DNA of 44,083 bases, taken from Bigelowiella natans CCMP2755. Its lineage: Eukaryota; Protista; Cercozoa. A program made the position numbers and the translations under genes. Position 1 is the stretch's first letter, and each line of letters begins with the position of its first letter. The stretch lies in NCBI GenBank assembly GCA_000320545.1, contig ADNK01001602.1, forward strand, positions 1 through 44,083. The letters are read 5' to 3'. This document shows, piece by piece, positions 15,709-38,981 of the stretch. Under the pieces are notes generated by a model. That model was not told the DNA's origin. It saw only the letters and a list, made by a program, of their open reading frames with translations, and did not search any database.

Positions 15709-15906
15709 AGCAGCAGGGTTATGACCATATACCCCACATTTCATTTCCCATCCACAATCAGTAGCAAAATTTGCGAAAATGCGCAACATGAAAATTTGCC
15801 TACTGACGACCTACTGCTGAACTGAATTGCTAGAATGACATGATGAAAACCACAGGCACATCCCATGTGTTTTGTGAAAACAATCTTTGTTAAAAATGAC
15901 ATAGCA
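15709..15906 (+). repeat. Solo, less-mutated copy of the inverted-repeat sequence that bounds the 28280-35106 element
   Basis: Shares GCAGCAGGGT...CCCCACATTT and CTGACGACCTACTGCTGAACTGAATTGCTAGAATGACATGATGAAAA...CACATCCCATGTGTTTTGTGAAAACAATCTTTGTTAAAAATGACAT with 28280-28615. Confidence 0.85.
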
Positions 15907-19032: not shown

Positions 19033-19088
19033 GGGGATTATCGGGGATTATCGGGGATTATCGGGGATCACAGGGGATTGCCGGGGAT
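19033..19088. repeat. 10-bp minisatellite (GGGGATTATC)n about 150 bp upstream of the RagA start
   Basis: GGGGATTATC x3, followed by the variants GGGGATCACA and GGGGATTGCC. Confidence 0.85.
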
Positions 19089-19362
19089 GGGGGGGCCAAC
19101 ATCCTTGCACCAGGGCGCACATGATTGTTGTCACACCAGTGGGTCCGCGTTGTTTTCAGCTCGAGACACTGCGTTTCGCACTTTGCAAATGTCATGCAAC
19201 ACTTTTGAAGTGTGGTCGATCAACAATGTCTCCTGTTTCTTGTCATCGATGATCCTTTGTGTCAGGTCCCCTGCTGGCCTGTTTGGAATTGAATCGCGCA
19301 AATTGGAGATCAATTGAAGCCCTGTTGAACGAATTGGAATTTGGCTCAGATGCATGCTGCGC

Positions 19363-19688
19363 TGTTGCGCGTAAGGTGTTCACAGGCCGAGGCGCTACGT
19401 GCACAAGTAGGCAGGGGGGGGAAAGGCACGTTTGCTTCCTTTTGAAGAGTTGTGTTTATTTTTATTAAAGATTATATTTTTATTAAATCGTGCACTGCGT
19501 AATCATTCGCGAAGCTTTCGCGAATGCCGCCGCACGTGGGGCAGCACACTTCCGGTGTGCTGCCATGAGTCCCGCCGGAACCCACGTGCCTATGCTGTAT
19601 TAATATCTACGTTATCTATATTCTATATCCGCGACAACCCCCTTTGTTGTCGCACGTGACTTGTGCCCGCGTAGTGGTACGCGCTACA
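19363..19688 (-). repeat. 3' LTR of the intact Gypsy element
   Basis: Direct repeat of 24753-25078, adjacent to the PPT. Confidence 0.95.
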
Positions 19689-19696
19689 CCTCCCCC
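19689..19696 (-). promoter_or_regulatory. Polypurine tract (GGGGGAGG)
   Basis: Purine run on the element strand immediately before the 3' LTR. Confidence 0.8.
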
Positions 19697-19739
19697 AAGT
19701 CACGTTGCTCCTTCCTTCCTTCCTTATTCCCTTAGACCT

Positions 19740-22700
19740 TCATCGCTTTCGGAACTTCACCAACCACCAGGTAATAGATTCCTCTCTAACCTTATCTCCT
19801 TTGTCGCTTACCCAGAACTCACCTTCGTCCTTAGGTTCGTGTCCATACCAGCCCTCTGCATCAAGGTCCCCCAGGACCTTATACCAGTGCTCAAAGGGTA
19901 AGTCGGGAACAGCTAGGTAGAGTAGCTGATATTTTCCGTCCTTTATTTTCATAGCTACCCTCTCCATATTTCGTAATCCAGGGTAGCCTAGATAGACAAT
20001 CTTCATGCGCCAATCGTCGTTCACCCTGACCTTATTGTTTCCATATTCCACATCGAACTTAGGTCGGGGTCCTAAACAAGGCATTGCTCGCTCCCACACA
20101 GTAGGGTTTACTTTAACATCCTCTAGGAGCTTCTCACCGATATCATAATTCTTTAGGTGACTGATGTGGCGCAAGGTGACCCTGTTCCCATCATAGATGT
20201 AGTACTGCTTCCTCCCCTTCCTCTCGGTAACCTTTGCAACGCCACCCCAGAAGGGGTCTTGTTTATTTCTCGATCTCAGATTTACCTTGGCCCTAACATA
20301 CTGTCCTTCCTTTAGAACTCGGCCATCGTACGGGACCTTCTCGTCTTCGCTCTCGGTATCGTCGTCGTTGTCGTCGCCTTCTTCCCTCTCCTTATCCTTG
20401 ATACCTCCCCCAGACGTGAAGGTGTCGTTTACTAACCCTTGTATCTTGTCTGGTGTGGTGCTATTTATCCTGCTTAGGTTGGCCAAGGTGCGGTGGAGTC
20501 GCTCTACCTTGGAGTTGGACTGGGCATAGTATACAGGTGAGGCATCAATATTAGGGTGTGGTAGCTGTAGAAGAGAGGTCTCATTATCCACATGTAACTT
20601 CTTTGGTATCTTGTTTATGCTAACTTCATCAGGGATAGCCTGGAGCTCAGACTCCCAGGTACGGTAGCAGTTAGTAAGCCTCTGCTTATATAAGCCTTTG
20701 TTCTTCTTAGCAACGTTGACCTTGATAATCTTTTTAACCCAGCACTTTCCAGTGGCCACATCAACGAAGGTAAGGTAGTGATAGCCATCGTACTTATAAA
20801 CATCAATTTGCACGATATCTAAGAAGTTCCTTGCTTTGATTTTCTTAGATGCACGGCTCTTGCTGGACTCCTTGGTGGCGACGCCTGCCGCCTTCAAGCT
20901 GGAGCACCTGCAGCCACGCAGGTATGTCCTTATCTCTTTTAGCTTGTAGGGCCAGTAGTAATGGTAGAGTAGAGCAGTGATATGGTTTTCTCCTACGTGT
21001 GCAGGTCCATGGGCGGTAAAGAGAAGGGCTCCCCTGGTCCGCCGTGGCACGTAGGTACGCCTAACATTATTAGTGTATACATATATCCTATCACTAAGTA
21101 CCTCATGCTTGTGTTTGTATTTATCCAGGTGTTCTTGAAGGTGCTGGAGCTCCTCTGGCTCAGGCAGGAAGTCGCCGTCCTCGAAGGTAATCGCGTTAAC
21201 CATAGGGGTGACCTGGGTAGGGACTTTCTTTTCGAACAGCCTGCTGAAATAGTCAGCAAGCTGCTTGTCTCCTGGTGCGTAGACCACTGTCCTCTTGTCC
21301 CTAAACTCTTCCGTGTCCGCCCTCATAGCTGCATACTCATCGTTAGGCGCTTCGAGCTTGCGGTCGATGCCTAGGAGGGGCTTGTGGTCAGTCATTAAGG
21401 TGAAGCTGGGCACCGACAGCAGGTAGTATCTTAGTTTCCTCTGCGCCTCAGTCATGGCTTTATACTCTCCTTTTGTAGGGCTGTACTTGGCCTCAGCTGC
21501 TGTGCAGGCCCTGCCCCACACCCGTATGATCTGCTGGTCTTGGGTAAGTACAGCAGCCATACCTAGCTTAGACCAGTCTGTCCATAGGGTAGCTGGTCTA
21601 GTAGTGTCTAGCTTAGCATTCAATAGGGTGTTGCTGCATAACTTTATTAGGTTATCGAAGTGGGCATCAAGGCCAGCCTTGGCCCACACCTTAGCGAAGC
21701 TGAGGCCTACAGAGTTCTCCTTCCGGTAAGCAGTAGTAAAAGCAGCTGCAGTCCTAGCGTAGGTAGGGGAGAACCTACGTAGTATCCAAGCTGCAGTCTG
21801 CAAGAATGACTTTAACTCCTTTGCATTCTTAGGTTTAGGGGCTTGCTGTAGTGCTGCTACTTTCTCGGGGTTTGGGGTGATGCGGCCTTGCTCCAGGTAA
21901 TATCCACACCACTTGATTCTTGTAGCTAGGAATGTACACTTCTGCAGTCTAATAGTAAAACCGAAGTGTGCAAACCTAATAAATATATTTTCCAGGAGGA
22001 AGATCTGAGCGACGACTGTGTTGGTACATATTATGTCATCATCCACATACACAAACACAAACACCCACAACACAGACGCCATCCCATCATGTGTGTATGC
22101 CCTGTAGTTCTGACTACTGAACGCATCCCCTGATATGCTTAGGCCGTAAGGGAATACGACGAAGTGCCACTTCCTGTGCCTGCTGGAGAACGCGGTAATG
22201 GGGCGGGAGGTTTTGTGGATGGGTGTCTGCATGTATGATTCATTTTTATCTAGGGAAGAGTAGTATTTGTATCCTATGACGTGTTCAATAACGTCATCTA
22301 TCCTTGGTGTAGGTGTCTGGATCCTCTTTATTACTCGGTTGTGGCGGATGAAGTTGTGCGCCAGGCGGAAGAAAGGGTAAGTAGGTTTCTTAGCTAGTAC
22401 ATGTCTCACGTTCCATGGTGAGTTGCTTGGCTCTATCTTCCCTTCCTTTGCCCATTCATTGATCTGCCACTCTATCTTTTCCCAGTCCGCTTCCGGTCGC
22501 CTATGTTCTGGGTCATTGATGATGCACTCTTCGTATCCCTTCTTTAGCTCGATCTTTACTGGGGTAAGCTTGCTGGAGGGCTTCGTCGTCGGCTTGGTGA
22601 TGTCAGAGTACTTCTCGTTTAATATTTTATTAATGTACTTTTTGCCTTTGTCGATATCCCAATCATCAGCTGGGGGGGTCTTGTCCAGTAGCTCCGTTAT

Positions 22701-24713
22701 CTGTCGGATGGTCTTGCCGGGGTTCTTCTTCCGTAGCTCGGTAGGTGTAGGTAGCTTGTTGTCCGCTAGGTCCATAAACTCTAACGCATTAACGCTTGAC
22801 TCAGAGGTCCACTCGTCAAGCCGTATCATGTTCTGGCTGATGGTCCTGCCTGACTTCTTTGGCAACTTAGCAAAGTATATCTTGTGATTGTAGAATGATA
22901 TGATCCCCCCTAATTTTTCTAGGGCATCCTGTCCGAGGAGTAGTTCCATGGATAAAGTCATGGCTACTCGGGTCTTGATTTGGGTCTCCGCGTCGCTGCC
23001 AGGTATCTGTAGCTTTAGCATTAGCTCACCGACGGTCTTCATGGAAGAGCTTCCGTCTGCTTGAGCATATTTACGTTCTTTCTTAGTCACTTGATCCAAT
23101 AGTCCTAACCTTCTTACTGTGCTTAGGCTTATGAAGGACTTCGGCATGCTGCCACTATCCCAAAGGGCAGGTAGTTTCTTGTAGTCTCCGTAGCTGTCTT
23201 TAACTTTAACCTTGGTCATAGCAACTTTGATAGTCCTGTTAGCGTCTTCGTCATTAATGTTGCATACTCCTAAGTTCTTTATGTCGTCTAGGGTCATGGG
23301 CTTGTCTTGGTCCTGCGTTGCTGGTACTGCTGTCTTCGTCGGCGCCTGCTTAAGGTGATCTAATATTCCGTTTATCTGCTGCTGTATAGCATTGATACTG
23401 TTCTGCTTTTTGTTCTTATATTTATTGTTCTTCCCGTTGTTGCTGCCTTGCCATTTGCTGTTGTTATATCCTTGTCCTCTGCCTTTCTTTCTCTTTAACT
23501 TCTCGTAGTGTTCGTTGAGCTGCCTGATCGTCATCCTGGGTCGTCCTTCTTTCCTGTCTCTGCAGTCTTTAGCGGTGTGTTTCCCTTTACGTGAGCAGTA
23601 TCCGCAACGTCGGTTACCTTCCCTGTCCTTGTACCAGTCTCGCTGCGGCTTAATAGCGTTAATGTTTCCTATGCCAGGTACCTTAGGGCTGGTAAACTTG
23701 CGGTCCTGCTCCTGCTCGCGTAGGGATATAGCCTGCACTGCTGCCTCCATCGTGGTGTAGCCTTTCTCCGTAACGTAAGTGGATTCCTTTATCTTTAACT
23801 TGAACTCTTCAAACCTTGCCTGATCATCACCTGTGTTGTAATTAAAATCATGTAGTTCGTCGATCATATCCTGGAAGCGCGTGGCAAAGTCTCTAACAGG
23901 TTCTCTCTCATGCTGCATCATTGCTCTGTATTTTCTAATAGCCTGGGGTAGGGAGTTAGCATCCTGTTCATTTACAAAAGCCTTCATTATCGCCTCAACG
24001 TCTCGTAGCCCACTAACTGTAGTGTGTATTTTCTCTAGCTGCCTGATCCGGGTCCTGCCTGTCTCGTAAAGGTCCATGGCTTGCTTTATTATAGCTAGCC
24101 ATTTGAGCTTGTCGTTTTCGGTGGGGTTAGGGGTAAAGTCGCAGAGTATACTCCTAGCGTTCTTCCACCACCTCCTTGCCTCACCTCTTTTCCCGTTGTA
24201 TTTCGTTATCATAACCGGTGCTGTTTTAACAGACATGAACTGGGTGTTCCGCTGTACCGGCTGCTGCTGCTTGACGGTGCTCTGGGTCGTCCCCCGCGAG
24301 GCGCCCAGACCCCCGTCGTTCCTAAACAAAGCTGCCCACTCTGGAGGTAAGTCTGCTTCGTAATCCATGATGTCCTGCATGATAGCTGCCCAAACATCAT
24401 GTGTCTGATACTTGTATTCTATCGATACTTTCAGTTTGGCGTAGTTGCTCGCCCTGGGTCGCAAGGCTCGTAATGCCATTACGACCTTCTTGCTTTCGGC
24501 GGCCACGTCCTCGTCGTCCGCCTCGTAGAAGTTCTCCAGTGCCTCTGCTGCTGCATCTGCTTTCTTAATCCCGGGTGCTGGTCCCGGCGGTGCCTGTGGA
24601 GGTGTTCCTCCTCCTTCCTTAGCGTCCGTATCGCCCTTCCTTTCCTGTTTCTGCTCGTGCCCTTGCACGGCCTGCGAGCCAAAGTCCTGCTGTTCTTCTA
24701 GCTGCTGTGACAT
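19740..24713 (-). CDS. Gag-Pol polyprotein (1657 aa): Gag with CCHC knuckle, aspartic protease, RT, RNase H, integrase, SH3-like region, C-terminal methyltransferase-like extension
   Basis: CGYCSRKGKHTAKDC; LWDSGS; SSLDKNESY...FPYGL...YVDDD; WTDWS...GEY...TDHKPL...LADYFSR; H-x3-H...CRC; QIDVY...VDNE...SNSKVERLHRTL. Confidence 0.95.
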   Translation of the reverse strand: MSQQLEEQQDFGSQAVQGHEQKQERKGDTDAKEGGGTPPQAPPGPAPGIKKADAAAEALENFYEADDEDVAAESKKVVMALRALRPRASNYAKLKVSIEYKYQTHDVWAAIMQDIMDYEADLPPEWAALFRNDGGLGASRGTTQSTVKQQQPVQRNTQFMSVKTAPVMITKYNGKRGEARRWWKNARSILCDFTPNPTENDKLKWLAIIKQAMDLYETGRTRIRQLEKIHTTVSGLRDVEAIMKAFVNEQDANSLPQAIRKYRAMMQHEREPVRDFATRFQDMIDELHDFNYNTGDDQARFEEFKLKIKESTYVTEKGYTTMEAAVQAISLREQEQDRKFTSPKVPGIGNINAIKPQRDWYKDREGNRRCGYCSRKGKHTAKDCRDRKEGRPRMTIRQLNEHYEKLKRKKGRGQGYNNSKWQGSNNGKNNKYKNKKQNSINAIQQQINGILDHLKQAPTKTAVPATQDQDKPMTLDDIKNLGVCNINDEDANRTIKVAMTKVKVKDSYGDYKKLPALWDSGSMPKSFISLSTVRRLGLLDQVTKKERKYAQADGSSSMKTVGELMLKLQIPGSDAETQIKTRVAMTLSMELLLGQDALEKLGGIISFYNHKIYFAKLPKKSGRTISQNMIRLDEWTSESSVNALEFMDLADNKLPTPTELRKKNPGKTIRQITELLDKTPPADDWDIDKGKKYINKILNEKYSDITKPTTKPSSKLTPVKIELKKGYEECIINDPEHRRPEADWEKIEWQINEWAKEGKIEPSNSPWNVRHVLAKKPTYPFFRLAHNFIRHNRVIKRIQTPTPRIDDVIEHVIGYKYYSSLDKNESYMQTPIHKTSRPITAFSSRHRKWHFVVFPYGLSISGDAFSSQNYRAYTHDGMASVLWVFVFVYVDDDIICTNTVVAQIFLLENIFIRFAHFGFTIRLQKCTFLATRIKWCGYYLEQGRITPNPEKVAALQQAPKPKNAKELKSFLQTAAWILRRFSPTYARTAAAFTTAYRKENSVGLSFAKVWAKAGLDAHFDNLIKLCSNTLLNAKLDTTRPATLWTDWSKLGMAAVLTQDQQIIRVWGRACTAAEAKYSPTKGEYKAMTEAQRKLRYYLLSVPSFTLMTDHKPLLGIDRKLEAPNDEYAAMRADTEEFRDKRTVVYAPGDKQLADYFSRLFEKKVPTQVTPMVNAITFEDGDFLPEPEELQHLQEHLDKYKHKHEVLSDRIYVYTNNVRRTYVPRRTRGALLFTAHGPAHVGENHITALLYHYYWPYKLKEIRTYLRGCRCSSLKAAGVATKESSKSRASKKIKARNFLDIVQIDVYKYDGYHYLTFVDVATGKCWVKKIIKVNVAKKNKGLYKQRLTNCYRTWESELQAIPDEVSINKIPKKLHVDNETSLLQLPHPNIDASPVYYAQSNSKVERLHRTLANLSRINSTTPDKIQGLVNDTFTSGGGIKDKEREEGDDNDDDTESEDEKVPYDGRVLKEGQYVRAKVNLRSRNKQDPFWGGVAKVTERKGRKQYYIYDGNRVTLRHISHLKNYDIGEKLLEDVKVNPTVWERAMPCLGPRPKFDVEYGNNKVRVNDDWRMKIVYLGYPGLRNMERVAMKIKDGKYQLLYLAVPDLPFEHWYKVLGDLDAEGWYGHEPKDEGEFWVSDKGDKVREESITWWLVKFRKR

Positions 24714-24729
24714 TGTTAGTCAAATCGTT

Positions 24730-24747
24730 TCCCGTGTGTGGAAGCCA
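24730..24747 (-). promoter_or_regulatory. Putative primer-binding site TGGCTTCCACACACGGGA
   Basis: Begins with TGG (complement of tRNA CCA) 5 nt inside the 5' LTR boundary and is conserved in the old copy (~35485-35502). The cognate tRNA was not determined. Confidence 0.65.
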
Positions 24748-24752
24748 AAGGT

Positions 24753-25078
24753 TGTTGCGCGTAAGGTGTTCACAGGCCGAGGCGCTACGTGCACAAGTAG
24801 GCAGGGGGGGGAAAGGCACGTTTGCTTCCTTTTGAAGAGTTGTGTTTATTTTTATTAAAGATTATATTTTTATTAAATCGTGCACTGCGTAATCATTCGC
24901 GAAGCTTTCGCGAATGCCGCCGCACGTGGGGCAGCACACTTCCGGTGTGCTGCCATGAGTCCCGCCGGAACCCACGTGCCTATGCTGTATTAATATCTAC
25001 GTTATCTATATTCTATATCCGCGACAACCCCCTTTGTTGTCGCACGTGACTTGTGCCCGCGTAGTGGTACGCGCTACA
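24753..25078 (-). repeat. 5' LTR of the intact Gypsy element
   Basis: Direct repeat of 19363-19688, adjacent to the PBS. Confidence 0.95.
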
Positions 25079-26111
25079 GCGCACGATTGCAATCGCCAAA
25101 TTCGACTCCCCACTGACCTCTCTGCTAGCCCCCCACCTCGACTTTTTTGCGGCGGTTTGTCGTCATCTCAAAGTCGCGATGACGTGTGACACGTGGTGAG
25201 TGCACGTTGCGGGCCTGCGATGTGTGGACTTGCAAGTCCCCGTCCAGCTGTGCGTGTGGTCTGTGACGTGTGCATCGACCACTTCACGTGCACCTCTGAC
25301 TTCACACGTGGCAAAAGAGCACGTGTGCTTTTTTCAGTGCACGTGAAGGATGGGCACACGTGTGTGCACGTTGCGCGTGGGGTGCCGCTCGGTGCTCAAG
25401 GCAAAGGCGCTGCGTGCACAAGGGGGGAAGGGGGACACGTTTGCTTCCTTTTGGATGGTTGATTCATTTTCATTGACAAACACGTTGTCATTGAATCGTG
25501 CACTGCGTGTTCATTCGCGAAGCTTTCGCGAAGCCGTCGCACGTGGGGCAGCACACCGGAAGTGTGCTGCCATGGGTCCCGCCGGAACCCACGTGCCTGT
25601 GCCACATTGACATCTACGTTGTCCATGTTCCACATCCGCGACAACCCCTTTGTTGTCGCACGTGACTTGTGCCCGCGCAGTGGCACGCGCTGCACCTCCC
25701 GCAAGTCACGTTGCTCCTTCCTTCCTTCCTTGTTCCCTTGGACCTTTGTCGCTTTCGGAACTTCACCAGCCACCAGGTGACAGATTCCTCTCCAACATCA
25801 TCTCCTTTGTCGCTTGCCCAGAACTCACCTTCATCCTCAGGTTCGTGTCCATGCCAGCTCTCTGCATCAAGGTCCCCCAGGACCTCATGCCAGTGCTCGA
25901 AAGGCAAGTCGGGAACAGCTAGGTGGAGCAGCTGATGTTTTCCGTCCTTTGTTTTCATGGCCACCCTCTCCACATTTCGCAATCCAGGGTGGCCTAGGTG
26001 GACAATCTTCATGCGCCAATCGTCGTTCACCCTGACCTCATTGTTTCCACATTCCACATCGAACTTGGGTCGGGGTCCTGAGCAAGGCATGGCTCGCTCC
26101 CACACGGTGGG

Positions 26112-26769
26112 GCGTGAAATTGCGGCTGTTCAGTGCCAGTGCAATGACGCCTAGCGCACAACACTGGATGGATGCAACAATTTCACAAGCAACATCGTGC
26201 ACGTGCATGACATGGATGGGCAGATGAGCAATTGGAAGGCTCTCGGAATGTTCCGAGATGCATTCCCAGAACATTCTTCAGAACATTCTGTGCGCGCGCA
26301 TGCTGATTCATCGGTGCAGGAGTGTGTCACTTCTCAAGTTGACACACTGCTGCATCAGGTGAAACCTCATTCAATCACATCACGACTTCTCAAGTTGACA
26401 CACTGCTGCATCAGGCCCTTGGCGTGCGCACTGATTGGCAGTGCACATTGTGCAGCGGAAGCGTGCAAAAGGCTGCATCTGAGAAGTGATTGCTGCAGAT
26501 TCTGAGTGAATCTTTGCGGGTCATGAAGTCCATGCGCAATGATGCGAAAATTCCCTTGCCAAAGTGCACTGGCAAGGACCCCACTCTGTTCCAAGAATGG
26601 TTTTCCAGGTTGACTGCTCACCTGAATGCACAGGGGAAAAGAGTGAGACAAGCACTGCACGGCAAAGGACCGTTCAAAGGATGCACCTTCACGGTTGCCA
26701 CAGTGCAAGATGGTGTCGATGACACAGCCAACCTCCTGGCTGAGCTGGGCCCACCGAATGGCCCCGTTC
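26112..26769 (+). mobile_element. Nested hypermutated fragment of a different retroelement (gag N-terminus-like) replacing ~2.5 kb of Gypsy pol
   Basis: No homology to the intact element. ORF IPLPKCTGKDPTLFQEWFSRLTAHLNA reverts to a gag-like IPLPKYTG...W...AYL. A 31-bp direct repeat (ACTTCTCAAGTTGACACACTGCTGCATCAGG) lies at ~26329 and ~26385. Confidence 0.5.
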
Positions 26770-28279
26770 ACATCCCAATCATCAGCTGGGGGGGTCTTGT
26801 CCAGTTGCTCTGTTGTCTGTCGGATGGTCTTGCCGGGGTTCTTCTTCCGTGTCTCGGCAGGTGGAGGCAGCTCATTGTCCGCTAGCATCCATGAACTCCA
26901 ACGCATTGACGCTTGACTCAGATGTCCACTGGTCAAGCCGCATCACGTTCTGGCTGATGGTTCTGCCAGACCGCTTCGGTGACTTGGCGCAGTGCACCTT
27001 GTGATTGCAGAATGACACGATCCCCCCCAATTTTTCCAGGGTGTCCTGTCCGAGGAGCAGTTCCATGGACAAAGTCATGGCCACTCGGGTCTTGATCTGG
27101 GTCTCCGCGTCGCTGCCAGGTGTCTGTGGCTTTGGCATCAACTCGCCGACGGTCCTCATGGAGGAGTTGCCGTCAGCTTGAGCAAACTTTCGTTCTTTCT
27201 CAGCAACCTGATCCAATGGTCCCAACCTTCTCACTGTGCTTGCTGGCTTGGGCTCACGAAGGACTTCGGCATGCTGCCACTGTCCCAAAGGGCAGGTGGT
27301 TTCTTGTGGTCTCCGCAGCTGTCTTTGACTTTGATCTTGGTCATGGCAACCTTGATGGTCCTGTTGGCGTCTTCGTCATTGATGTTGCATGCTCCTGAGT
27401 TCTTCACGTCGTCCAGGGTCATGGGCTTGTCTTGGTCCTGCGTTGCTGGCACTGCTGTCTTCGTCGGCGCCTGCTCAAGGTGGTCCAATGTTCCGTTTGT
27501 CTGCTGCTGCATGGCATTGACACTGTTCTGCTTCTTGCTCTTGTGTTTGCTGTTCTTTCCATTGTTGTTGCCTTGCCATCTGTTGTTGTCACATCCTTGT
27601 CCTCTGCCTTTCTTTCGCTCTTCAACTTCTCGCAGTGTTCGTTGAGCTGCCCAATCGTCATCCTGGGCCGTCCTTCTTTCCTGTCTCTGCAGTCTTCAGC
27701 GGTGTGCTTCCCTTTGCGTGAGCAGTGTCCGCAGCGCCTGTTCCCCTCCCTGTCCTTGCACCAGTCCCGCTGCAGCTTGATGGCGTTGATGTTTCCCATT
27801 CCAGGCACTTTGGGGCTGGTGAACTTGCGGTCCTGCTCCTGCTCGCGCAAGGATGTGGCCTGCACTGCTGCCTCCATCGTCGTGTGGCCTTTCTCCGCAA
27901 CGTGAGCAGATTCCTTTGTCTTCAATTTGAATTCCTCAAACCTTGCCTGATCATCACCTGTGTTGCAATTGAAATCATGCAGTTCGTCGATCACATCCTG
28001 GAAGCGCGTGGCAAAGTCTCTGACAGGTTCTCTCTCATGCTGCATCATTGCTCTGCATTTTCCAATGGCCTGAGATGGGGAGTTAGCGTCCTGTTCATTT
28101 GCGAAAGTCCAAATTGTCGCCTCAACGTCTCGTAGCCCACCAACTGCAGTGTGTTTTTCTCCAGCTGCCTGATTCGGGTCCTGCCTGTCTCGCAAAGGTC
28201 CATGGCTTGCTTCATCACAGCTAGCCATTTGAGCTTGTCACTTTCGGTGGGGTCAGGGGTGAAGTCACAGAGCACACTC

Positions 28280-28635
28280 GCAGCAGGGTGCACACCACAC
28301 CCCACATTTGATTTCCCATTTGCCGTTGGCAGGGGAATGACACAAAATTTTCATTTCAAAAATTCACCCACTGACGACCTACTGCTGAACTGAATTGCTA
28401 GAATGACATGGCAAAATTGCACGAGCATGACATGTCAAGTGTTCGACATTTGATTTCCCATCAGCAATCAGTAGCAAAATGTGCGAAAATGCGCAACATG
28501 AAAGCTTCACCTGCTGACGACCCACTGCTGAACTGAATTGCTAGAATGACATGATGAAAATCACAGGCACATCCCATGTGTTTTGTGAAAACAATCTTTG
28601 TTAAAAATGACATGGCAAAATCCACAGCAGAGCAT
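28280..28635 (+). repeat. Left inverted repeat (contains an internal duplicated CTGACGAC...GAATGACATG unit)
   Basis: Matches 34795-35106 (inverted) and 15709-15906 (direct). Confidence 0.9.
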
Positions 28636-28678
28636 TGCGTCATCACCCACACAGCAGAATTTCTCATGCATCATGGAA

Positions 28679-30691
28679 TTAAGTCTCCTTTTCCTCTAGT
28701 TCCAGAACACCTGGAAGGACAAATAGGTACTGACCGAGCTCCGATTTCAGCTGGGGAAAACCATCAACTTTTCCATATTCTACAACTTTCCCATTGGATT
28801 TTATATAGGATTGGTAGGCAAAATCTTTGACGTAGTCTTTGCCTCCACGCGAACTTCCCTCTGGGAGAACAAAAATGAGAACGTACCCTTCCAAATCCGA
28901 ATGTCTCTCTTTGGCCGCCTTCCACACTGCCCCGATTCCAGCAGTTTTAACAGGATGTCTAAGGGAAAATGTTATTTGAATAAGATACAAAATTTTCCCG
29001 GATATGAACAGTGAATCTATGCTTTCCAGGTTGCGCCAACTAGGCTCGTAGTAGGTATCGACTTTGAATTCACAATCTTGGAAGTTTTTCTGTGTGAAGT
29101 ACTCGTGCCCCTTGATGTTCTTTAAATCAACTTCAAGATCAGGGCCAGTCTTCTTGTCTGGCGTAACTAGTTTCCTAGTCGGCTTGAAAATGCCATCCAT
29201 GTTGGTAAAATGCATTGTGGTCAATCGTTCCAACCAATCTGCGTATTCGTGGTTCTCTATTGCCCCCTTTGCTGCCGCTGAAACCTTGTACCTTGCCATT
29301 TTGATGAAAAAAGTCGTGAACTTCTTACGAAAAAGGTTGGATACGTATGCACTAGCGAATCGGAAGTAATACTCCCTTCCAAGACCCCTGTTTTGAGGCA
29401 CCATGTGTGCCAGTCGACCAGAACTGAAAGCCTCCGCACTCTGATTTGTGGGGTAAAAAAAATCCTCCAGTTCGTTTCTTCTTACACTATCCACCAATTT
29501 GTCGATATCTTCGGAATCTTCGGATTTCTCAAAAATGTAGCGAAGAGAGGGTCCCCATTTTTTCATTCGCTCATTCATCTCAGATTTACTGAGCTGCGTG
29601 TAGCACCTTGAACGACAATCCCTAATTTCTTCCGAAAGCCACGTTGGAAAAATAATCATCTCATGTGCTGTCTTACCGAACAAGTCGTTCATGTCCCTAT
29701 ATTTATTCTTAGTGAGTAGGCTGGCCCTCTTTGGAGAAACCCATCCGACATGGATGATTAACTGGTTGTCTAAATCAGCAATTGGGTTGTCCCCTTGTGG
29801 GTCAATGAAGTTGAACACCTTACCTTCTGACACAGATAGCAAACAACGTATTGCATCATCCTCTTTACGGATGATTTCAATTTCGCCATGCTTGGGAAAT
29901 TGTTTTGGGATCCAAGCCCAAAGCCTTCCGAATTGAAAAAGGCACGGATACTCGAAAACCTCTTTCAATTTTTTCAACACTATGAGCGCTGCTGTGGTCT
30001 TTCCTCCCCCGGGCATGCCCGTGATGAGAAATTTGTCTACATTTCCACTCTGAAGCAACTCTTTAATTTTTCCTGCTATCTCAAAATAGCAAGAACGGCA
30101 ATAAACGACTTGTGAATGTTGATTCCTGAGGATTTCTCTATTCCAACGGAGGATGCCATACTTCCTATCTCTCCCAGTAGGATCCTCGATATTTTCGATC
30201 TTCGTTTCGAACAACACTTTGAAATCATTTTGGTATTTTTTCCTCGCCGTCTCGATCTCTGTTTTTCTTAACGCTCCGCTTTCATCAATTTCCATGGCTG
30301 AACACACAGGCAAAACTATCTCAGCACACCAATTGCTCATCAGATGTTACAAAAATACATTACCGGTTGCATCCTCGAATTTCTTTGACACGTCCTTCAG
30401 TTCTGCCTCCTTCGCCTGAATTTCCTCGTCCAATTTGTCAATAGCACCCTTGAGCGCCTCTTCTTTCTCCTTATTCTTCTCCGTTGCCCAAGCGATGCTC
30501 AAAGCTTTTCTTTCATCCCTCAATTTCAAGATTTCCTGCTTTGTAAGTTGGATCTGATTTCCCCATACCTCAGAACGCTGAGAACACATCAAAGCTTAAG
30601 CTCCCGAACGCAAGCCTCGTAGGATAAGTACCTGTGCTTTCGAACTTCTCCTGCTAGGGATTCTTTCATCTACCTTCCCACTACGCTTCAT
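28679..30691 (-). CDS. Crinkler/RHS-like protein: N-terminal coiled coil + P-loop NTPase + PD-(D/E)xK-type (REase-fold) nuclease; 3 exons
   Basis: VYCRSCY...FLITGMPGGGKTT (Walker A); FPTWLSEEI...KWGPSLRYIF; YYEPSWRNLESIDSL...LYLIQITFSLRHPVK is a typical CRN/RHS C-terminus. Introns at 30298-30363 and ~30578-30631 give an open frame from MKRSGKVDE (30691). Confidence 0.8.
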
Positions 30692-30937
30692 CGAGTCTGA
30701 TTTCGAGTCTGGTGTGAAGATCTTCACGGGAGACTCTCGTTGCGGCGAATCCCCGGAAAGAGCATTACCGGGAGTATTACCGGTATTGCCCGTTAGTGTC
30801 CGTTAGTGTCCGAAGATTAGGGACTCCCATTTTCATCCCGGAATGCCCAGCAGCGGGGAGAGTCTCCGGTGAAGAACTGACACGTGTGGCTGATATGGCA
30901 AAGACATTAAATGTCAAATTTTCGGGCACACGATGCC

Positions 30938-31700
30938 TCAAAGCTCCAGCCCAGTGATGGTGTTTTCGTACCCAGGTTTCACCCATTGATCCTCAAAGCC
31001 ATCTTCAAACTCAACATCCTGAGGGGTGTACTCACCAAATGCTGGGTAAGTCTGTTGATTATTTCTACTAAGATTACATTCCACACAAGTCAATCTACAA
31101 TCATTCCACAGATGAGGTTGAGCATTATCAATTCTATCCACAGAAACATTATCAGCAGTAAATCCACATCTACACACAGGGCAGTGAGGGTGATTATTAA
31201 CAGTTCTTTTCATCCATTTCTCATCAATATGTTCCTTCTCTTCCCATGTTCTACCAGCTCTTTTGTCCTGAGATCTATACGAAGACACTTTCATTCGTAG
31301 TTTTTGAGTAATCATACTTTCCTTTAATCTGTAGCATTCTTTATCGCTGTGCTGATATATTTGTATCTGTGATAGGTCAGTGGAGCGAGTCATAGCAGTC
31401 CAGAGCCACTTGCGATTAATTCTACAGGTATTTGCATCAAACACGGTGATAGGACCATCAACTGATAATCCTTGGAAACTATGACAGGTAGAGGCATATG
31501 ACAATCTAAAATGCTTACTAATTAATTCTATAGGAATTCTTATTTCTTCCATATCACATACATCTTGTATTACAAATTCTTTTTTATTTACTTTAATAAT
31601 TTCATAAGTGTAGTTCACATATAGTTTTGGTTTCTTATTGTACTTTTTACATACAATCTCCATACCAGCATAGTAGCTATGTGTGTGATGCTTGGATATT
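30938..31700 (-). pseudogene. 5'-truncated SF1 (RecD/Pif1-like) helicase C-terminus fused to an HNH-type endonuclease, as in Polinton-like-virus replication proteins
   Basis: Helicase motif V YASTCHSFQGLS and motif VI LWTAMTRS, then CPVC...SVDRIDNAQPHLWNDCRLTCVECN. The N-terminal helicase motifs are absent; an in-frame stop/junction lies near 31700. Confidence 0.75.
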
Positions 31701-31823
31701 TAATTGGTAGAGTATCGGCATCAATTAGTGATTTAGACCCTACAAATGATTATTTGATTATAAATTAAAAAAATATTTTTTTTTGAAATTTTGTTAATGA
31801 AAATTATCTAAATCTTTATAACT

Positions 31824-32429
31824 ATGAGTTCTTCTACCGCACATTTCCGTAATTCAGTTTTAATTGATGGATTACTTACCGGTCCTACTATTGTTAGAAT
31901 AGACACCGAAAAAACTGCTGTTCTTAACAGTCTTAATCAACAAATTTCTGACTTTCAAATAGCAGAAACAAACAATGCTCAAGCAAGAGCAGATTTACAA
32001 AATCAAATTGATAATGCTAATGCTTCTATGACTCAGGCTATGGGTGATTTAACCCAACTTGTTGATGACAACAAAGCAGATATTGAATGTAAATTAGCAA
32101 CAGAAACTAATGAAAGACTTTCATTAGCAAGTGAAGTAAGCAACAGAAATGCATTTGTAGATGGTGAAATTACCAGACTTGACCAACAACATGCTGATGA
32201 TGATGCTAGACTTACAGCTGTTGAAGCAACACAAGCTACTTTTAATTTAGATGTAGAATCTAAAATTCAAGAGAGAATTGATGCTCACAATGCTGATCTT
32301 GATAATACCCTTCCTCGTTTAGCAAAATTAGAAGAGTATTTTGAAATCGATGAATCAGGAACAGAACCAGTTGTAAGAATTAAAGGAGGTGTTAAATTTG
32401 AAGTAAGTGGCGATTTCGTCCAAGGTTAG
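31824..32429 (+). CDS. Viral-like coiled-coil protein (possible fibre or structural protein)
   Basis: Intronless, AT-rich and tightly packed; central heptad-like region. Its C-terminus resembles that of the next ORF. Confidence 0.6.
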   Translation: MSSSTAHFRNSVLIDGLLTGPTIVRIDTEKTAVLNSLNQQISDFQIAETNNAQARADLQNQIDNANASMTQAMGDLTQLVDDNKADIECKLATETNERLSLASEVSNRNAFVDGEITRLDQQHADDDARLTAVEATQATFNLDVESKIQERIDAHNADLDNTLPRLAKLEEYFEIDESGTEPVVRIKGGVKFEVSGDFVQG

Positions 32430-32478
32430 ATTACAAATGTGATTTAAATAACATATAAAAATCTAACAATTAATAATA

Positions 32479-32721
32479 ATGTCTAACATTAAAGGTGGTG
32501 GTGCTATTTTCAAAGAAACACCTACAATGGCAAACAATGTTGTAGGTCAAACAACAGATACTATTAATCAACAATTAAACGATAATAATGCACAAAACAC
32601 AGAAAATAAATTACAACCTGATTTTTTAAAAGAAGTTTTTATGATGGATAAAGAAAACAAAACTATTACGATAAATTCTGAATGTAAACTCATTGTGCCT
32701 AATGATTTAATTCAAGGATAG
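32479..32721 (+). CDS. Small viral-like protein
   Basis: Intronless 80-aa ORF; C-terminus TITINSECKLIVPNDLIQG parallels VVRIKGGVKFEVSGDFVQG of the upstream ORF. Confidence 0.55.
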   Translation: MSNIKGGGAIFKETPTMANNVVGQTTDTINQQLNDNNAQNTENKLQPDFLKEVFMMDKENKTITINSECKLIVPNDLIQG

Positions 32722-32760
32722 TTCGTTTAAAAATAGTATAGTTTTTTATAGTCATAAGTA

Positions 32761-33342
32761 ATGACTACAAGAAAAGTGTATTTTTATAGATTAACATGTT
32801 TAAATACAAGAGAAACATATGTAGGTAGTACTACTATGAATCCAAAATTAAGATTGCAAATGCATCTTGCTAATTTTAGAGCATATGAAAAAGGTTTTGG
32901 TAATTTTTGCTCTTCGTATCAAATTTTAAAAAGAGATAATTACATGTTTCAAGTTATATTAGAAAAGGATGCTAAAAAAATATCTGTTTATCAGAAAAGA
33001 AAGAAAGAAGCAGAACTAATAGCTGAAGAAAAAATGAAAAGAAAATGTGTTAATAAAAATATTCCAGGTAGAGATATAAAACAATATAGAATAGATAATA
33101 GAGATTATATTAATGCTTATGCGAGAGATTATTATGAAGATATAACAAAACACGATAAAATATATTGTCCCTTCTGTGATGGACATGTAATTAAAAAATA
33201 TTATGAACATCATATACACACTAAAAAGCACATAAAAAATCTTCTCAAATTAAATGATGAAAATAAAAATACCAGCGAAAGTAAGCAAGAAAGCAAGATT
33301 AGCATTGAAATTAAAGAAGCTAAATTGGAAAGGCACGATTGA
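32761..33342 (+). CDS. GIY-YIG endonuclease with C-terminal C2H2 zinc finger (NCLDV/PLV type)
   Basis: VYFYRLTC...TYVGST...RLQMH...E...VNKNIP; CPFC...HIHTKKH. Confidence 0.8.
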   Translation: MTTRKVYFYRLTCLNTRETYVGSTTMNPKLRLQMHLANFRAYEKGFGNFCSSYQILKRDNYMFQVILEKDAKKISVYQKRKKEAELIAEEKMKRKCVNKNIPGRDIKQYRIDNRDYINAYARDYYEDITKHDKIYCPFCDGHVIKKYYEHHIHTKKHIKNLLKLNDENKNTSESKQESKISIEIKEAKLERHD

Positions 33343-34000
33343 AACTGGAATGAAAAGAGCTAAACAATTAGCATGTGACGATACTATAGATGTTGAAGAT
33401 GTTGTCGTGATGAATGCTTGGTTTAGTAGGCATCAATGCACTTCTAAACCAGGATGCGACAAATGGAAAGCAGATGGCAAACCGATGGATCAAGGACAAA
33501 GAAACAAGAGAAGAGGTGCTGTTTCGTGGTTAGCCTGGGGAGGAAATGCTGGATTTGAGTGGGTTAACAGTAAAAAAGTTCAAGATGTCATCAAAAAGTA
33601 CAAGATGAGCAAAAATAAAAAGTATGTGCCTAAATCATTAAGCAAAGAAGATAGAAAAAAACAAATAGAGAGCATATTTTATGGCAGAGCACGGCCTAAA
33701 TTAAGAAGTTTTAAAAGCAAGAAATCCAAATGGACTGTCAAAGCTGACAAGCATTTCAAAGGTGACACATCCTCATCTAATGTGACTAAAGTTTTAGATG
33801 TTCCTTCAAAAGCATCAAAAAAAATTATGAAAAAAGGTGAAGGAGCTTACTACTCTGGGGGATCAAGACCGAATCAAAGTGCTGAGTCGTGGTCAAGAGC
33901 CCGTCTGCATTCTGTTCTGTTTGGTGGACCATCTCGTGATGTTGATGAAAAGATTGCAAGCAAATGTGACATTCCTTTGTTGGAACAAAAAAATCTGTAG
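33254..34000 (+). CDS. Basic viral protein(s): phage/NCLDV-type 'RAKQLA...FSRH...SWLAWGG' domain followed by a DUF5824-like domain; partly hypermutated
   Basis: GMKRAKQLA...MNAWFSRH...VSWLAWGGNAGFEW; KYVPKSLS...KGEGAYYSGGSRPNQSAESWSRARL. Apparent Tyr->Cys/His scars (HQCTSKPGCDKW). Confidence 0.65.
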   Translation: MMKIKIPAKVSKKARLALKLKKLNWKGTIETGMKRAKQLACDDTIDVEDVVVMNAWFSRHQCTSKPGCDKWKADGKPMDQGQRNKRRGAVSWLAWGGNAGFEWVNSKKVQDVIKKYKMSKNKKYVPKSLSKEDRKKQIESIFYGRARPKLRSFKSKKSKWTVKADKHFKGDTSSSNVTKVLDVPSKASKKIMKKGEGAYYSGGSRPNQSAESWSRARLHSVLFGGPSRDVDEKIASKCDIPLLEQKNL

Positions 34001-34007
34001 TGTCACA

Positions 34008-34166
34008 ATGGCATTAAAAAAATTAACCAAAAGACAGAAAGATTTGTTAGCCGCTCATGGCAAGCATCATGGCAAAAAACACATGGCTTCTGTGAGAATG
34101 AACCTGATGTCAGGTAAAACTTTCAAAGAAGCACACGAATTAGCAACTAAAAAGTGTGGCAAATGA
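34008..34166 (+). CDS. Small basic His-containing viral protein (PLV/phage-like)
   Basis: MALKKLTKRQKDLLAAHGKHHGKKHM...GKTFKEAHELATKKCGK, tightly packed after the previous ORF. Confidence 0.55.
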   Translation: MALKKLTKRQKDLLAAHGKHHGKKHMASVRMNLMSGKTFKEAHELATKKCGK

Positions 34167-34201
34167 TTTTTGTCATCATTGACAATGATGACAAAGTTCA
34201 T

Positions 34202-34794
34202 TCAAATGACAAGATGTTTTTTGTGACTGTCTTCAAGTTCAATGTTGTCTTTGTCATTGGATTTCTTGTGATGTTTGCGAAACAAGTCATCAAAATTTTT
34301 TGATTTGACATCATTGGGCAATGCCGTTTTCATTGTTCCTTCTGCAGATCCGTCGCTGCATTTCACTTTGAAGGTAGCAGGTTCTTGATGGTCATTTTTC
34401 TTTGCTTTGTTTGTGTGGTCCAATGTTTCAACGATGCATTTCTGCTTTTTGTTTCGCAGATTGCGTGCAGGTTTTGACTCAATGTCTGCAAGTTTTTCAA
34501 ATTGTTCACAATCCAATGGCCTTTTGCTGTCAGTGCATCCATGACATGACATGCAATCTTTTGATCTTGATGCTGGTTGAGTTCCCTCACCTTGACCGAA
34601 CTTGATGACAAGTTCTTCAGCAGATTTCCTTTTGCATGTGTCCATGTTGGACGATGTCACATGCAACAATCTTTTGTTCTTCAAAGATCCAAATTGTTCT
34701 TCCGTCAGCCATTTGTCCAATGGCTTTCCATTTTTTCATTTGAACATTCTCATTTGTCACTTCAGGTGAGAACAAATTTGCAGTGTTTTCAACG
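34202..34794 (-). pseudogene. Hypermutated viral-like ORF remnant
   Basis: Lys-rich 172-aa frame that is AT-rich yet nearly TA-free, with no Tyr and many His/Cys. Confidence 0.45.
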
Positions 34795-35106
34795 ATGCTC
34801 TGCTGTGGATTTTGCCATGTCATTTTTGACAAAGATTGTTTTCACAAAACACATGGGATGTGCCTGTGATTTTCATCATGTCATTCTAGCAATTCAGTTC
34901 AGCAGCAGGTCGTCAGTGGGTGAAGCTTTCACGTTGCGCATTTTCGCACATTTTGCTGCAGATTGCTGATGGGAAATCAAATGTCGAACACTTGACATGT
35001 CATGCTCGTGCAATTTTGCCATGTCATTCCAGCAATTCAGTTCAGCAGCAGGTCGTCAGTGGGTGAATTTTTGAAATGAAAATTTTGTGTCATTCCCCTG
35101 CCAACG
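34795..35106 (-). repeat. Right inverted repeat (outer ~40 bp missing)
   Basis: Reverse complement of 28324-28635. Confidence 0.9.
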
Positions 35107-35822
35107 TCTGCTTCGCAATCCACAATGTCCTGCATGACAGCTGCCCAAACATCACGTGTCTGACACTTGCATTCCATCGATGCTTTCAGTTTGGCGCAGT
35201 TGCTCGCCCCAGGTCGCAAGGCTCGCAATGCCAATGCGACCTTCTTGCTTTCGGCGGCCACGTTCTCGTCGTCCGCCTCGTGGAAGTTCTCCAGTGCCTC
35301 CGCTGCTGCATCTGCTTTCTCAATCCCGGGTGCTGGTCCCGGCGGTGCCTGTGGAGGTGTTCCTCCTCCTTCCTTGGCGTCCGCATCGCCCTTCCTTTCC
35401 TGTTCCCGCTCGTGCCCTGGCACGGCCTGCGGTCCAAAGTCCTGCTGTTCTTCTAGCTGCTGCAACATTGGCAGTCAAATCGTTTCCCGTGTGTGGAAGC
35501 CAAAGGTTGTTGCGCGCAGGGTGCCGCTCGGTGCTCAAGGCAAAGGCGCTACGTGCACAAGGAGGGAAGGGGGACACGTTTGCTTCCTTTTGGACAGTCA
35601 ATTTGTTTTCATCAATGAATGTGTTGTCATCAAATCGTGCACTGCGTGTTCATTCGCGAAGCCGTCGCACGTGGGGCAGCACACTTCCGGTGTGCTGCCA
35701 TGGGTCCCGCCGGAACCCACGTGCCCATGCTGCATTGACATCTACGTCATCTGTGTTCTGCATCCGCGACAACCCCTTTGTTGTCGCACGTGACTTGTGC
35801 TCGCGTAGCAGTGCGCGCCACA

Positions 35823-36400
35823 TGCATGCGCGTGCACGTGCATGGGCTTGCAAGTCCCTGTGGCGATGCAAGTTCACACTCATTGTGTCAACACGCAAAA
35901 AAACAACTCCAATCACTGTTTTGCACAGCATGGTTTTCATTGGAACAATTCCTGATTTTTTTGGTTTTTTTCCCAAAAATTGTCATCATCTACACGCTGA
36001 TCTTGGCAACTAGCCGTGGCGATCACAGACAACAGTGCAGTGTGCACGTGTTGACTGTGGTTGGCCATGTTGCACACATCATTGCGACGCCTGCGTCGCG
36101 AGCGGCATGACACTCACACATGGAACTTGCACATGTACACACGCTGTGATCTAGGAAATCATGCATGGCGCCAGATTTGATTCATTGACAGCACAGCTTG
36201 ATGCAAAATTTGCAAGGTTGCGTCATTTGACGGAAGATGTGCAACACTCCAACTCATGTTGATGTTGAATGGCAAATTGGAATGCAAGGACAGATCTGTG
36301 ATGTGTCATGAGTTGGCACCATTGCCATTCCACAAAACAAAGAATGTGATGATCACTTTTGTTTGGAGCGAGATGAGCGATGTTTTCAAGAAAGTTTCTC
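35823..36400. other. TpA-depleted flank domain
   Basis: TG/CA-saturated; the few surviving TA are mostly CTAG or CTAC. Confidence 0.7.
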
Positions 36401-37515
36401 CCGTAGAGTGGACACAATTTTTTCAAAAGCTTCAATTCCACCTTGTTGCCTTTTCAAGGTTAAGATGGCAAAGGCATTAGAACCATATTTCCTTTCATAA
36501 CCTTGGATGACGTTGCACTGAATATTGAGAGACTGAGGCGTAGATATTTCAAATTTTGTTTTCATTTTATCCTTATGTGCAATTTTAAAGGCTGTGCAAC
36601 TTTTGATATCTTTGATGATGTCCAACGTGGACTTTGGAGGTGATGAAAGAAGAAGAATTTTTTTTACATAAGGATCAAGGGATAGCTTCTCCATGCCACC
36701 TACAATTTTAATGTTTCCTAGTTCTCTCTCTCCACGCGGAAGGATTGATCTCGTGACTCGATGTTTCCTGATATTATACTCGACGGTGTATGGAAAAAGG
36801 TTTCGCTTCTTCAACCACACCTTTACGACTATCTGCGCTTCATCTATACATATTTTATTCCTATACGCGAGATCTCCAGTGAATATTTCTTTACATTCCA
36901 CGACCAACTTGTTAGAATTCCCCATGATGCACTCCACTTTCACATTCCCCAAAAAAGCGTTGAGTTGCTCTTCACATTTTTCCGCAGAATCAACGGCTTT
37001 GTCCAAAAGTTTGTCCGGTCTGATCGTCCTAAGAATAATTCAAATTCTCAGTCCACATACACTCTACACCGATCAGTATTACATCTTTAAGGGCTCGCCG
37101 TCGCCTTCCTGATTTACATAAATCAATTCAGCCGTGTACCTCACACATATTGTAACATAAGATTACTCGCTTCCACATCGTTCTAGCGAAGTCTTCACGG
37201 CGTCCAGCACACATAGCTGATGCATCAGTATCTTCTTTCTTGGGATTATCAATAAGTTTCGTGCCCTTTTCGCAGACAATTTTGTAGACATTCTCCATGA
37301 AACAATTGTATAGATGACGAAGTTTTTGTGGGCAACGTTCTCCAAATGACTTGAAATAATTAATTTTCCTCTCATATCCCTTTTCCTTCTCCCAATAGTT
37401 GTATAGATCCTTGTAACGATCTTTCACAACTGTGTTGTTGAAAAGAATATTTGTTTTCCTATTCTTTTTTCCCTTGACCCTAGCTGCAGCTTCCTTTTGT
37501 ATGTTTTTATGGAAC
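36386..37515 (-). CDS. Hypothetical spliced protein (5' end uncertain)
   Basis: Exons ...FARTMWKR | EGDGEPLKM | TIRPDKLLDKAVDSAEK...REKLS* are joined in frame by two GT-AG introns. No family recognised. Confidence 0.6.
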
Positions 37516-38654: not shown

Positions 38655-38981
38655 TTGTAATTGTACAACTGTTTTGAAGTGATGATGCTAGACATTGACT
38701 CGCTCGCTCGTGTAGACTGTGCGTGTTTGTGTTATGTGTAGTCCCATCCCGAATCGAATATTTTTTTCTCAAGGCTAGCGAAGATTCATTTGAGTCCGAT
38801 GAGGAGAAGCGCGACCTTGTAATTGTACAACTGTTTTGAAGTGATGATGCTAGACATTGACTCGCTCGCTCGTGTAGACTGTGCGTGTTTGTGTTATGTG
38901 TAGTCCCATCCCGAATCGAATATTTTTTTCTCAAGGCTAGCGAAGATTCATTTGAGTCCGATGAGGAGAAGCGCGACCTTG
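38655..38981. repeat. Near-perfect 162-bp tandem duplication
   Basis: The unit TTGTAATTGTACAAC...GAGAAGCGCGACC starts at 38655 and again at 38817. Confidence 0.95.

Follow-up and report, generated by a model that had tools for sequence, protein, structure and literature searches.

Within a 44,083-nt stretch of the Bigelowiella natans CCMP2755 genome (assembly GCA_000320545.1, contig ADNK01001602.1, positions 1 to 44,083 of the forward strand; hereafter the window), the relic of a Ty3/Gypsy-type long terminal repeat (LTR) retrotransposon and the ~0.6 kb that border it on either side have very probably undergone hypermutation of the integrated DNA, restricted to TpA dinucleotides and converting A:T to G:C pairs, as described in the same organism by Mettrop et al. 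(bioRxiv 10.64898/2026.01.13.699255, April 2026 version). In the mutation-accumulation experiment of these authors, 231 of 302 new single-nucleotide mutations fell within one integrated nucleocytoplasmic large DNA virus (NCLDV) region and one virophage region, and 230 of these 231 were A>G or T>C changes, all of them on TpA. The viral-region rate was ~6e-7 per site per generation, ~1000 times baseline, and hypermutation was limited to some lines. The same work reported 124 TpA-depleted clusters and an enrichment of TpA-depleted coding sequences for reverse-transcriptase and DDE domains, and its authors proposed an ADAT2-like adenine deaminase. The process has already been demonstrated by experiment, and the relic is a further instance of the same TpA-only A:T-to-G:C hypermutation. 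An earlier reading of the window, made from the sequence only, had named no characterized eukaryotic pathway with this signature, a statement that is out of date now that the preprint describes one; a literature search returned no paper on the TpA signature besides it. What the locus adds is an LTR-pair proof for a retrotransposon, which shows post-integration and strand-symmetric change, near-saturation at ~90% TA loss, erased margins of ~0.6 kb, a chronology involving two insertions, at least 23 escaping copies that make copy number insufficient as a trigger, and the sparing of CTAG. The main text of the preprint does not compare element copies or paired LTRs with each other, nor does it build a chronology from flanks or nested insertions (bioRxiv 10.64898/2026.01.13.699255).

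The substitution counts that follow come from assembled contig sequence and set the one relic against one intact copy of the same Gypsy family, its neighbor on the contig at a distance of 300 bp, with ~3 kb aligned and differences polarized from intact to relic. The relic matches the intact copy in three blocks (25370–26112 against 19375–20106, 26772–28279 against 22656–24153, and 35106–35822 against 24351–25078), and 249 of the 364 differences between them are A>G or T>C. The rate of A>G per A depends on the 5' neighbor, reaching 184/403 (46%) after T, as opposed to 24/404 (5.9%) after A, 26/359 (7.2%) after C and 14/340 (4.1%) after G (Fisher p = 1.2e-67 for the enrichment after T), and the 3' neighbor of the A had no effect on this rate in the aligned ~3 kb. 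Of the 202 TA dinucleotides in the intact copy, 97 read CA in the relic, 84 TG, 11 TA and one CG (~90% erased), and 181 of the 191 changed ancestral TA sites therefore read TG or CA. The claims of the sequence-only reading that nearly every TA had been replaced by TG or CA, that substitutions were enriched at TpA over other A contexts and that CpG was retained are all borne out by these counts, with CG kept at 143 of 155 sites; the example strings that it quoted are exactly those of the intact LTR and of the relic LTR designated LTR_a. GC-biased gene conversion is ruled out, given that A>G outside TA is not raised, and so is CpG decay, given the retention of CG. The same retention, together with the opposite direction of change, upholds the earlier judgment that neither decay of 5-methylcytosine nor fungal repeat-induced point mutation (RIP) fits the pattern. 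RIP is further ruled out by the loss rather than gain of TA, by the lack of tyrosine codons and of new TA in the relic, and by 23 unmutated copies in the genome. The TG and CA outcomes show no strand bias (84 vs. 97; p = 0.37), and their order along the relic is random (88 runs vs. 90.5 expected), so that the runs test, applied here at saturation, gives no sign of kataegis-like bursts coordinated by strand.

The direction of change is established by the coding sequence and by the LTRs of the relic. Over ~740 aligned residues, the relic contains no tyrosine, against 28 in the intact open reading frame (ORF), with Y>C seen 13 times, Y>H 13 times and Y>F once, and the peptide changes listed in the sequence-only reading (CGYC>CGHC, YKKLPALW>HKKPPALW and DWYKD>DWCKD) are all present. 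Wherever the relic has TA, the intact copy has it as well, and no site at which the intact copy reads TG or CA has become TA in the relic. TA must thus be ancestral, since a tyrosine-free functional ancestor with 11 TA in 3 kb is not credible. The two relic LTRs, LTR_a and LTR_b, differ at 26 TA-derived positions, and at ancestral TA sites they read TG/CA (LTR_a/LTR_b) six times, CA/TG five times, CA/CA five times and TG/TG three times. These 19 doubly mutated sites, 11 discordant and eight concordant, fit independent 50:50 choices, and the reciprocal TG/CA states at the 11 discordant sites indicate that TA was their common starting state. The polarity proposed in the sequence-only reading from the open 1657-aa ORF and identical LTRs of the intact copy is hence confirmed, and both the LTR-pair test and the tyrosine counts agree with it. 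The LTRs of a single insertion are identical at integration. Because those of the relic now differ, the changes arose after integration and independently in each LTR, and the discordance of the LTRs, together with equal and intermixed TG and CA outcomes, implies a process that attacked both strands of the element as integrated, double-stranded DNA. There is no transcription-strand bias, and RNA editing and reverse-transcription errors are excluded as the main source of the changes.

Alternatives to post-integration TpA hypermutation can be weighed against this evidence. Editing before integration, by an ADAR-like enzyme with a 5'-U preference acting on element RNA, or through errors of the reverse transcriptase, can appeal to the preference of ADARs for a 5' U and to the edited retroelement copies known in animals (discussed in bioRxiv 10.64898/2026.01.13.699255). 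It is nonetheless highly improbable, as the LTR test refutes it for most changes, the TGCA shared by the two outer LTR edges opposes an origin of the LTRs from separate insertions, the two strands are mutated equally with outcomes intermixed at single-site scale, and non-element flanks and a later nested element have been erased too. Even less credit can be given to the opposite direction of change or to subfamily divergence, in which the relic would keep a CA/TG-rich ancestral state and the active lineage would have gained TA through a RIP-like C>T process at CpA. A pairwise comparison is symmetric when taken alone, and the two copies do differ by ~6% outside TA sites, but this scenario needs ~740 gag-pol residues devoid of tyrosine, cannot yield reciprocal TG/CA between the relic LTRs without a TA intermediate, and would have changed just ~1/3 of CA/TG and yet kept the ORF open; experiment, moreover, shows TA turning into TG and CA (bioRxiv 10.64898/2026.01.13.699255). 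An assembly or base-calling artefact is just as implausible. The identity of the 22 other young copies of the family might partly stem from consensus assembly, but the pattern is limited to one dinucleotide, has sharp domain edges, differs between the two LTRs of one element, spares a neighboring copy at 300 bp distance on the contig and agrees with an experimental signature that was sequenced independently.

As regards mechanism, the process would change A to G wherever, on one strand or the other of a chromosomal domain, the A stands in 5'-TA-3'. TA is self-complementary, so that either strand could be hit and TG or CA would result at equal odds; lacking the motif, these products would allow each site to change only once, toward the ~90% completion seen in the relic, where few targets are left. 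The underlying reaction would most likely be a hydrolytic conversion of adenine to hypoxanthine, carried out by a TadA/ADAT-type deaminase that is recruited to foreign DNA under silencing, with the irreversible inactivation of the element as its presumable effect. The known A34 tRNA substrates of TadA/ADAT all carry U33 immediately 5' of the edited A, a context that would fit the 5'-T rule. Profile matches reveal at least six loci with a TadA/CDA-fold deaminase domain in the genome (contigs C980, C3623, C3286, C3588, C570, and C1679), and one ADAT1/ADAR-type locus (contig C2414); Bn78255 and Bn77986 of the preprint are enzyme candidates too. The TadA and ADAT2-ADAT3 enzymes and their DNA-active relatives, among them the engineered TadA base editors, share with the process a conversion of A to I that is read as G, although none of the natural enzymes with this fold is known to remove TA over chromosomal domains of kilobase length; amphioxus BjADAT2 is a DNA-active ADAT relative (as cited in bioRxiv 10.64898/2026.01.13.699255). 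Both the deaminase chemistry and the proposed role in genome defense are inferences. The same process and targeting could also operate through other chemistry, such as misinsertion opposite T by an error-prone polymerase or during repair, or the conversion or miscopying of a modified adenine (e.g., N6-methyladenine at TA). In favor of such chemistry, no deaminase has been linked to the process, for which a housekeeping ADAT2 homologue is all that the preprint puts forward, and the resistance of CTAG described below could stem from DNA modification at this site, or from protein bound there, instead of the preference of an enzyme. We consider it unlikely, if well short of negligible, since transitions alone, a strict single-base 5' specificity and the lack of transversions or indels at TA are typical of deaminases, of which the genome encodes several candidates. 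A Pol-eta-like polymerase, one of the candidates of the sequence-only reading, is likewise disfavored, as its WA signature predicts raised mutation at AA, where the observed rate is not above those at CA or GA.

The TA dinucleotides that survive in the relic reveal an extended sequence context. All 11 of them lie in CTA/TAG contexts (p = 5e-6), and survival falls from 5/9 at CTAG to 5/36 at CTAC/GTAG, 1/25 at CTAA/TTAG and 0/131 in all other contexts. When the erased DNA of the window is pooled with that flanking four other young copies of the family, CTAG accounts for 28 of 53 survivors (53% vs. 3.9% outside erased DNA; p = 5e-24) and CTAC/GTAG for 14 (26% vs. 14%). The base that precedes TA also has an influence, with W mutated more than S (ATA 0.56 and TTA 0.50 vs. 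CTA 0.34 and GTA 0.37), and the two strands of CTAC are mutated alike (14 vs. 13). The main text of the preprint contains no such extended-context (CTAG) analysis (bioRxiv 10.64898/2026.01.13.699255).

Erasure of TA extends beyond the relic. Across the relic, rho TpA is 0.00–0.15 and rho CpA+TpG 1.53–1.86 in 1-kb windows, with three successive 1-kb windows from 25079 giving 0.09, 0.04 and 0.00 for the former and 1.53, 1.72 and 1.60 for the latter, values that lie within the thresholds for TpA-depleted clusters of Mettrop et al. (bioRxiv 10.64898/2026.01.13.699255). The erased domain has sharp edges, at ~19060 and ~36400. Once the young intact element that was later inserted into the left flank is removed, the left margin amounts to 594 bp (25079–25369 plus 19060–19362), and the right margin to ~580 bp (35823 to ~36403). 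These flanks are made up in part of short dispersed repeats, the copies of which are poor in TA genome-wide. In the right flank, positions 35863–36018 correspond to a ~155-bp dispersed repeat and the remainder has no other match in the genome. More than 30 copies of this repeat (loci L028–L055 among them) are all TA-poor, and the ~20 copies that were compared for the polarity of the right flank are so throughout. At the same positions, copies alternate between CA and TG, as in AACACAAC vs. AATGCAAC, and the few TA that are conserved lie in CTAC or CTAG. The TpA process may therefore have struck this repeat family genome-wide. A second TA-erased block, with rho TpA of 0.10–0.31 and rho CpA+TpG of up to 1.91, was observed in the window at 11535–12383, and its ORFs have no Pfam match.

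The young element that sits inside the erased domain provides an unmutated counterpart to the relic. It keeps 398 TA, with rho TpA of 0.9–1.35, and a search of the B. natans assembly (91.4 Mb in 3736 contigs) identified at least 22 other full-length copies that are 99.9% identical to it. Scoring of these 23 full-length copies yielded zero TA-to-TG/CA differences, with the proviso that consensus assembly could have masked private variants among near-identical copies, and the only differences are two substitutions and the lengths of LTR homopolymers. At element position 3036 (window position 22398), the window copy has T (GTAC) and the other 22 have C (GCAC), which can be read either as an ordinary C>T change in the window copy or as a TA>CA hit in the master of the other 22; the relic is deleted at this position and gives no direction for the difference. 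The other substitution, at element position 4698, is a T>C in TG context found in a single copy. From the 211 mutations, 6169 TA and 3132 generations of the preprint (bioRxiv 10.64898/2026.01.13.699255), the rate of the process can be estimated at ~1.1e-5 hits per TA per generation, which would bring about 90% TA loss in ~2e5 generations and, were all 23 copies targeted, would add a hit to them about every ten generations. The lack of TA-to-TG/CA differences among the 23 copies shows that young copies are evidently not targeted at this rate, and it implies that copy number or homology alone is not the trigger. For the relic, the divergence between LTRs outside TA is 6.6%, corresponding to ~1e8 generations at the baseline rate, far above the ~2e5 needed for erasure. 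Four other young copies (L003, L005, L021, and L022, on contigs C1182, C1317, C274, and C265) adjoin TA-erased DNA on one side, with rho TpA of 0.02–0.20 across 1.5 kb, which together with the window makes five of 23 copies; young Gypsy copies may have an insertion preference for erased domains, but at 5/23 this is not significant. The DNA flanking the 22 additional young copies contained no diverged members of the Gypsy family.

A second insertion, the 6.8-kb element that splits the relic, bears on the timing of the process. Its inverted termini, 312 bp long and 96.8% identical, show 10 mismatches, eight of them at TA/TG/CA states and two of these reciprocal TG/CA. The right ~950 bp of the element are TA-erased and its middle is normal, with rho TpA of 0.02–0.14 over 34001–35000 vs. 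0.74–0.89 over 31001–33500. The differences of the termini at TA/TG/CA sites, both one-sided and reciprocal, and the erasure of the right end indicate that the process was still running after this nested insertion. The element has matches to GIY-YIG, DUF5824 and UvrD_C_2 and contains a 553-aa ORF with a weak match to the RHSP P-loop, and it looks like the virophage-like or transpoviron-like elements reported for B. natans. Its termini recur at dozens of genomic sites, and the window contains a terminus fragment at 15736–15906.

The LTR-pair test, the loss of tyrosine and the accumulation-line data (bioRxiv 10.64898/2026.01.13.699255) jointly sustain the proposal of the sequence-only reading that a locally targeted, DNA-level A:T-to-G:C mutator acts at TpA. 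Its further suggestion that the mutator is targeted to repeats or heterochromatin holds for local targeting, but repeat targeting in the sense of RIP is not supported, since at least 23 near-identical 5.7-kb copies are unmutated. We tentatively propose, as a possibility somewhat less probable than its negation, that targeting follows not repeat homology but a state of chromatin or silencing that extends over the element and ~0.6 kb on each side, that active multi-copy elements escape, and that mutation obeys a four-base rule under which CTAG is nearly immune. Neither chromatin-state targeting nor the CTAG rule appears in the main text of the preprint (bioRxiv 10.64898/2026.01.13.699255). If true, they would suggest that a natural DNA adenine deaminase senses the bases surrounding TA, or that CTAG carries a protective modification. 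Several considerations weigh against the main reading, that of TpA hypermutation acting on the relic and its flanks through an adenine deaminase. Spreading into the flanks is inseparable from the own history of the dispersed repeats that they contain, and is therefore plausible, but not proven. A simple per-strand rule based on the nucleotide before TA fails to explain the resistance of CTAG over that of CTAC or GTAC. Lastly, the enzyme candidate of the preprint is the housekeeping ADAT2.

Comparison with known systems places the relic closest to the process of Mettrop et al. (bioRxiv 10.64898/2026.01.13.699255), with which it shares a regional change of foreign DNA in the same organism that consists almost only of A>G and T>C, at TpA only and on both strands. 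It differs in that the target is an LTR retrotransposon relic, ~90% saturated, and in that the process is read here from history instead of accumulation lines. Fungal RIP resembles the process in acting on post-integration DNA through dinucleotide-specific transitions on both strands, which can reach saturation and ruin transposons. RIP also leaks into neighboring DNA. The process is nevertheless its mirror image, with TpA converted to CpA or TpG by A>G instead of CpA to TpA by C>T, and duplication is what triggers RIP, yet here the process has left at least 23 near-identical copies of 5.7 kb unchanged. The editing of retroelements by ADAR and APOBEC3 is also a deaminase-type transition hypermutation of mobile elements, with a 5'-U preference in the case of ADAR, but it operates on RNA or first-strand cDNA before integration, with one-strand polarity and identical LTRs as a result, whereas the LTRs of the relic differ and both of its strands have been mutated. 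The process would constitute the first natural, regionally targeted eukaryotic A:T-to-G:C mutator of chromosomal DNA, for which credit belongs to the preprint (bioRxiv 10.64898/2026.01.13.699255), and, as a mirror of fungal RIP, it is a possible source of natural DNA adenine deaminases. The locus itself amounts to a natural experiment, in which an LTR pair provides an internal clock and also tests the direction of change, in the company of two nested insertions and an unmutated sister copy 300 bp away.

The features of the locus are listed in Table 1. The family is of Ty3/Gypsy type, as seen in its LTRs, in the 4-bp target-site duplications GCGC (young element) and TGCA (relic), and in the domain order protease, reverse transcriptase, RNase H, and integrase. 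The LTRs of the young element are 326 bp long and 100% identical, and its ORF matches gag-asp_proteas (aa 513–599, weak), RVT_1 (aa 798–939) and RT_RNaseH (aa 1036–1118), with Integrase_H2C2 at ~aa 1222–1269 under the curated cut-off. The presence of TGCA at the outer edges of both LTR_a and LTR_b establishes that the pieces of the relic are one insertion. The sequence-only reading had placed this copy at 25369–28279; the copy itself is as described there, but its extent is not, the third piece at 35106–35822 having been missed. The relic lacks the reverse transcriptase, RNase H and integrase region (20106–22656 in the intact copy), and the 661-bp block found in its place has no homology within the window and no Pfam match. 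The left flank is in two pieces because the young element inserted into it later.

Table 1. Features of the TA-erased domain and of the elements within it (window coordinates; strand as given).
Feature	Position	Strand	Basis and remarks
TA-erased left flank, left part	19040–19362	.	Scored TA-erased interval; 0 TA in 19060–19362; holds a ~110-bp dispersed repeat
Young intact Ty3/Gypsy-type LTR retrotransposon, not hypermutated	19363–25078	-	LTRs 19363–19688 and 24753–25078; ORF 19740–24713
TA-erased flank, young element to relic	25079–25369	.	1 TA in 291 bp (25126, within CTAG); partly short dispersed repeats
Relic LTR_a, 3' LTR by element orientation, hypermutated	25370–25691	-	Three-way LTR alignment
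Relic internal, polyprotein C-terminal end (aa 1537–1657 at 25749–26111)	25692–26111	-	tblastn 85% identity; Tyr 7 intact vs. 0 relic
661-bp block unrelated to the family, TA-erased, in place of reverse transcriptase/RNase H/integrase	26112–26772	.	1 TA, at 26152
Relic internal, gag and protease (aa 186–693), hypermutated, frameshifted	26751–28284	-	tblastn segments 61–84% identical; 0 Tyr, 0 stops; 87.3% DNA identity
6.8-kb element with inverted termini, later insertion splitting the relic	28280–35106	.	Termini 28324–28635 and 34795–35106
Relic internal, N-terminal end (aa 1–122 at 35103–35468) and leader, hypermutated	35103–35508	-	tblastn 82% identity; Tyr 5 intact vs. 0 relic
Relic LTR_b, 5' LTR by element orientation, hypermutated independently of LTR_a	35509–35822	-	Three-way LTR alignment
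TA-erased right flank, ~0.6 kb	35823–36477	.	Erased interval scored 34142–36477; normal TA density from ~36404

Two minor observations concern sequence rearrangements in the window. LTR_a contains a hairpin at 25552–25566 (stem GCAGCACAC / GTGTGCTGC) in which the 6-base loop is inverted, reading CCGGAA vs. TTCCGG at 19545, 24935, and 35680; this difference is a small loop inversion and not a point mutation. Beyond the right edge of the erased domain, a 162-bp unit is perfectly duplicated in tandem at 38655–38978, with 100% identity between its copies.

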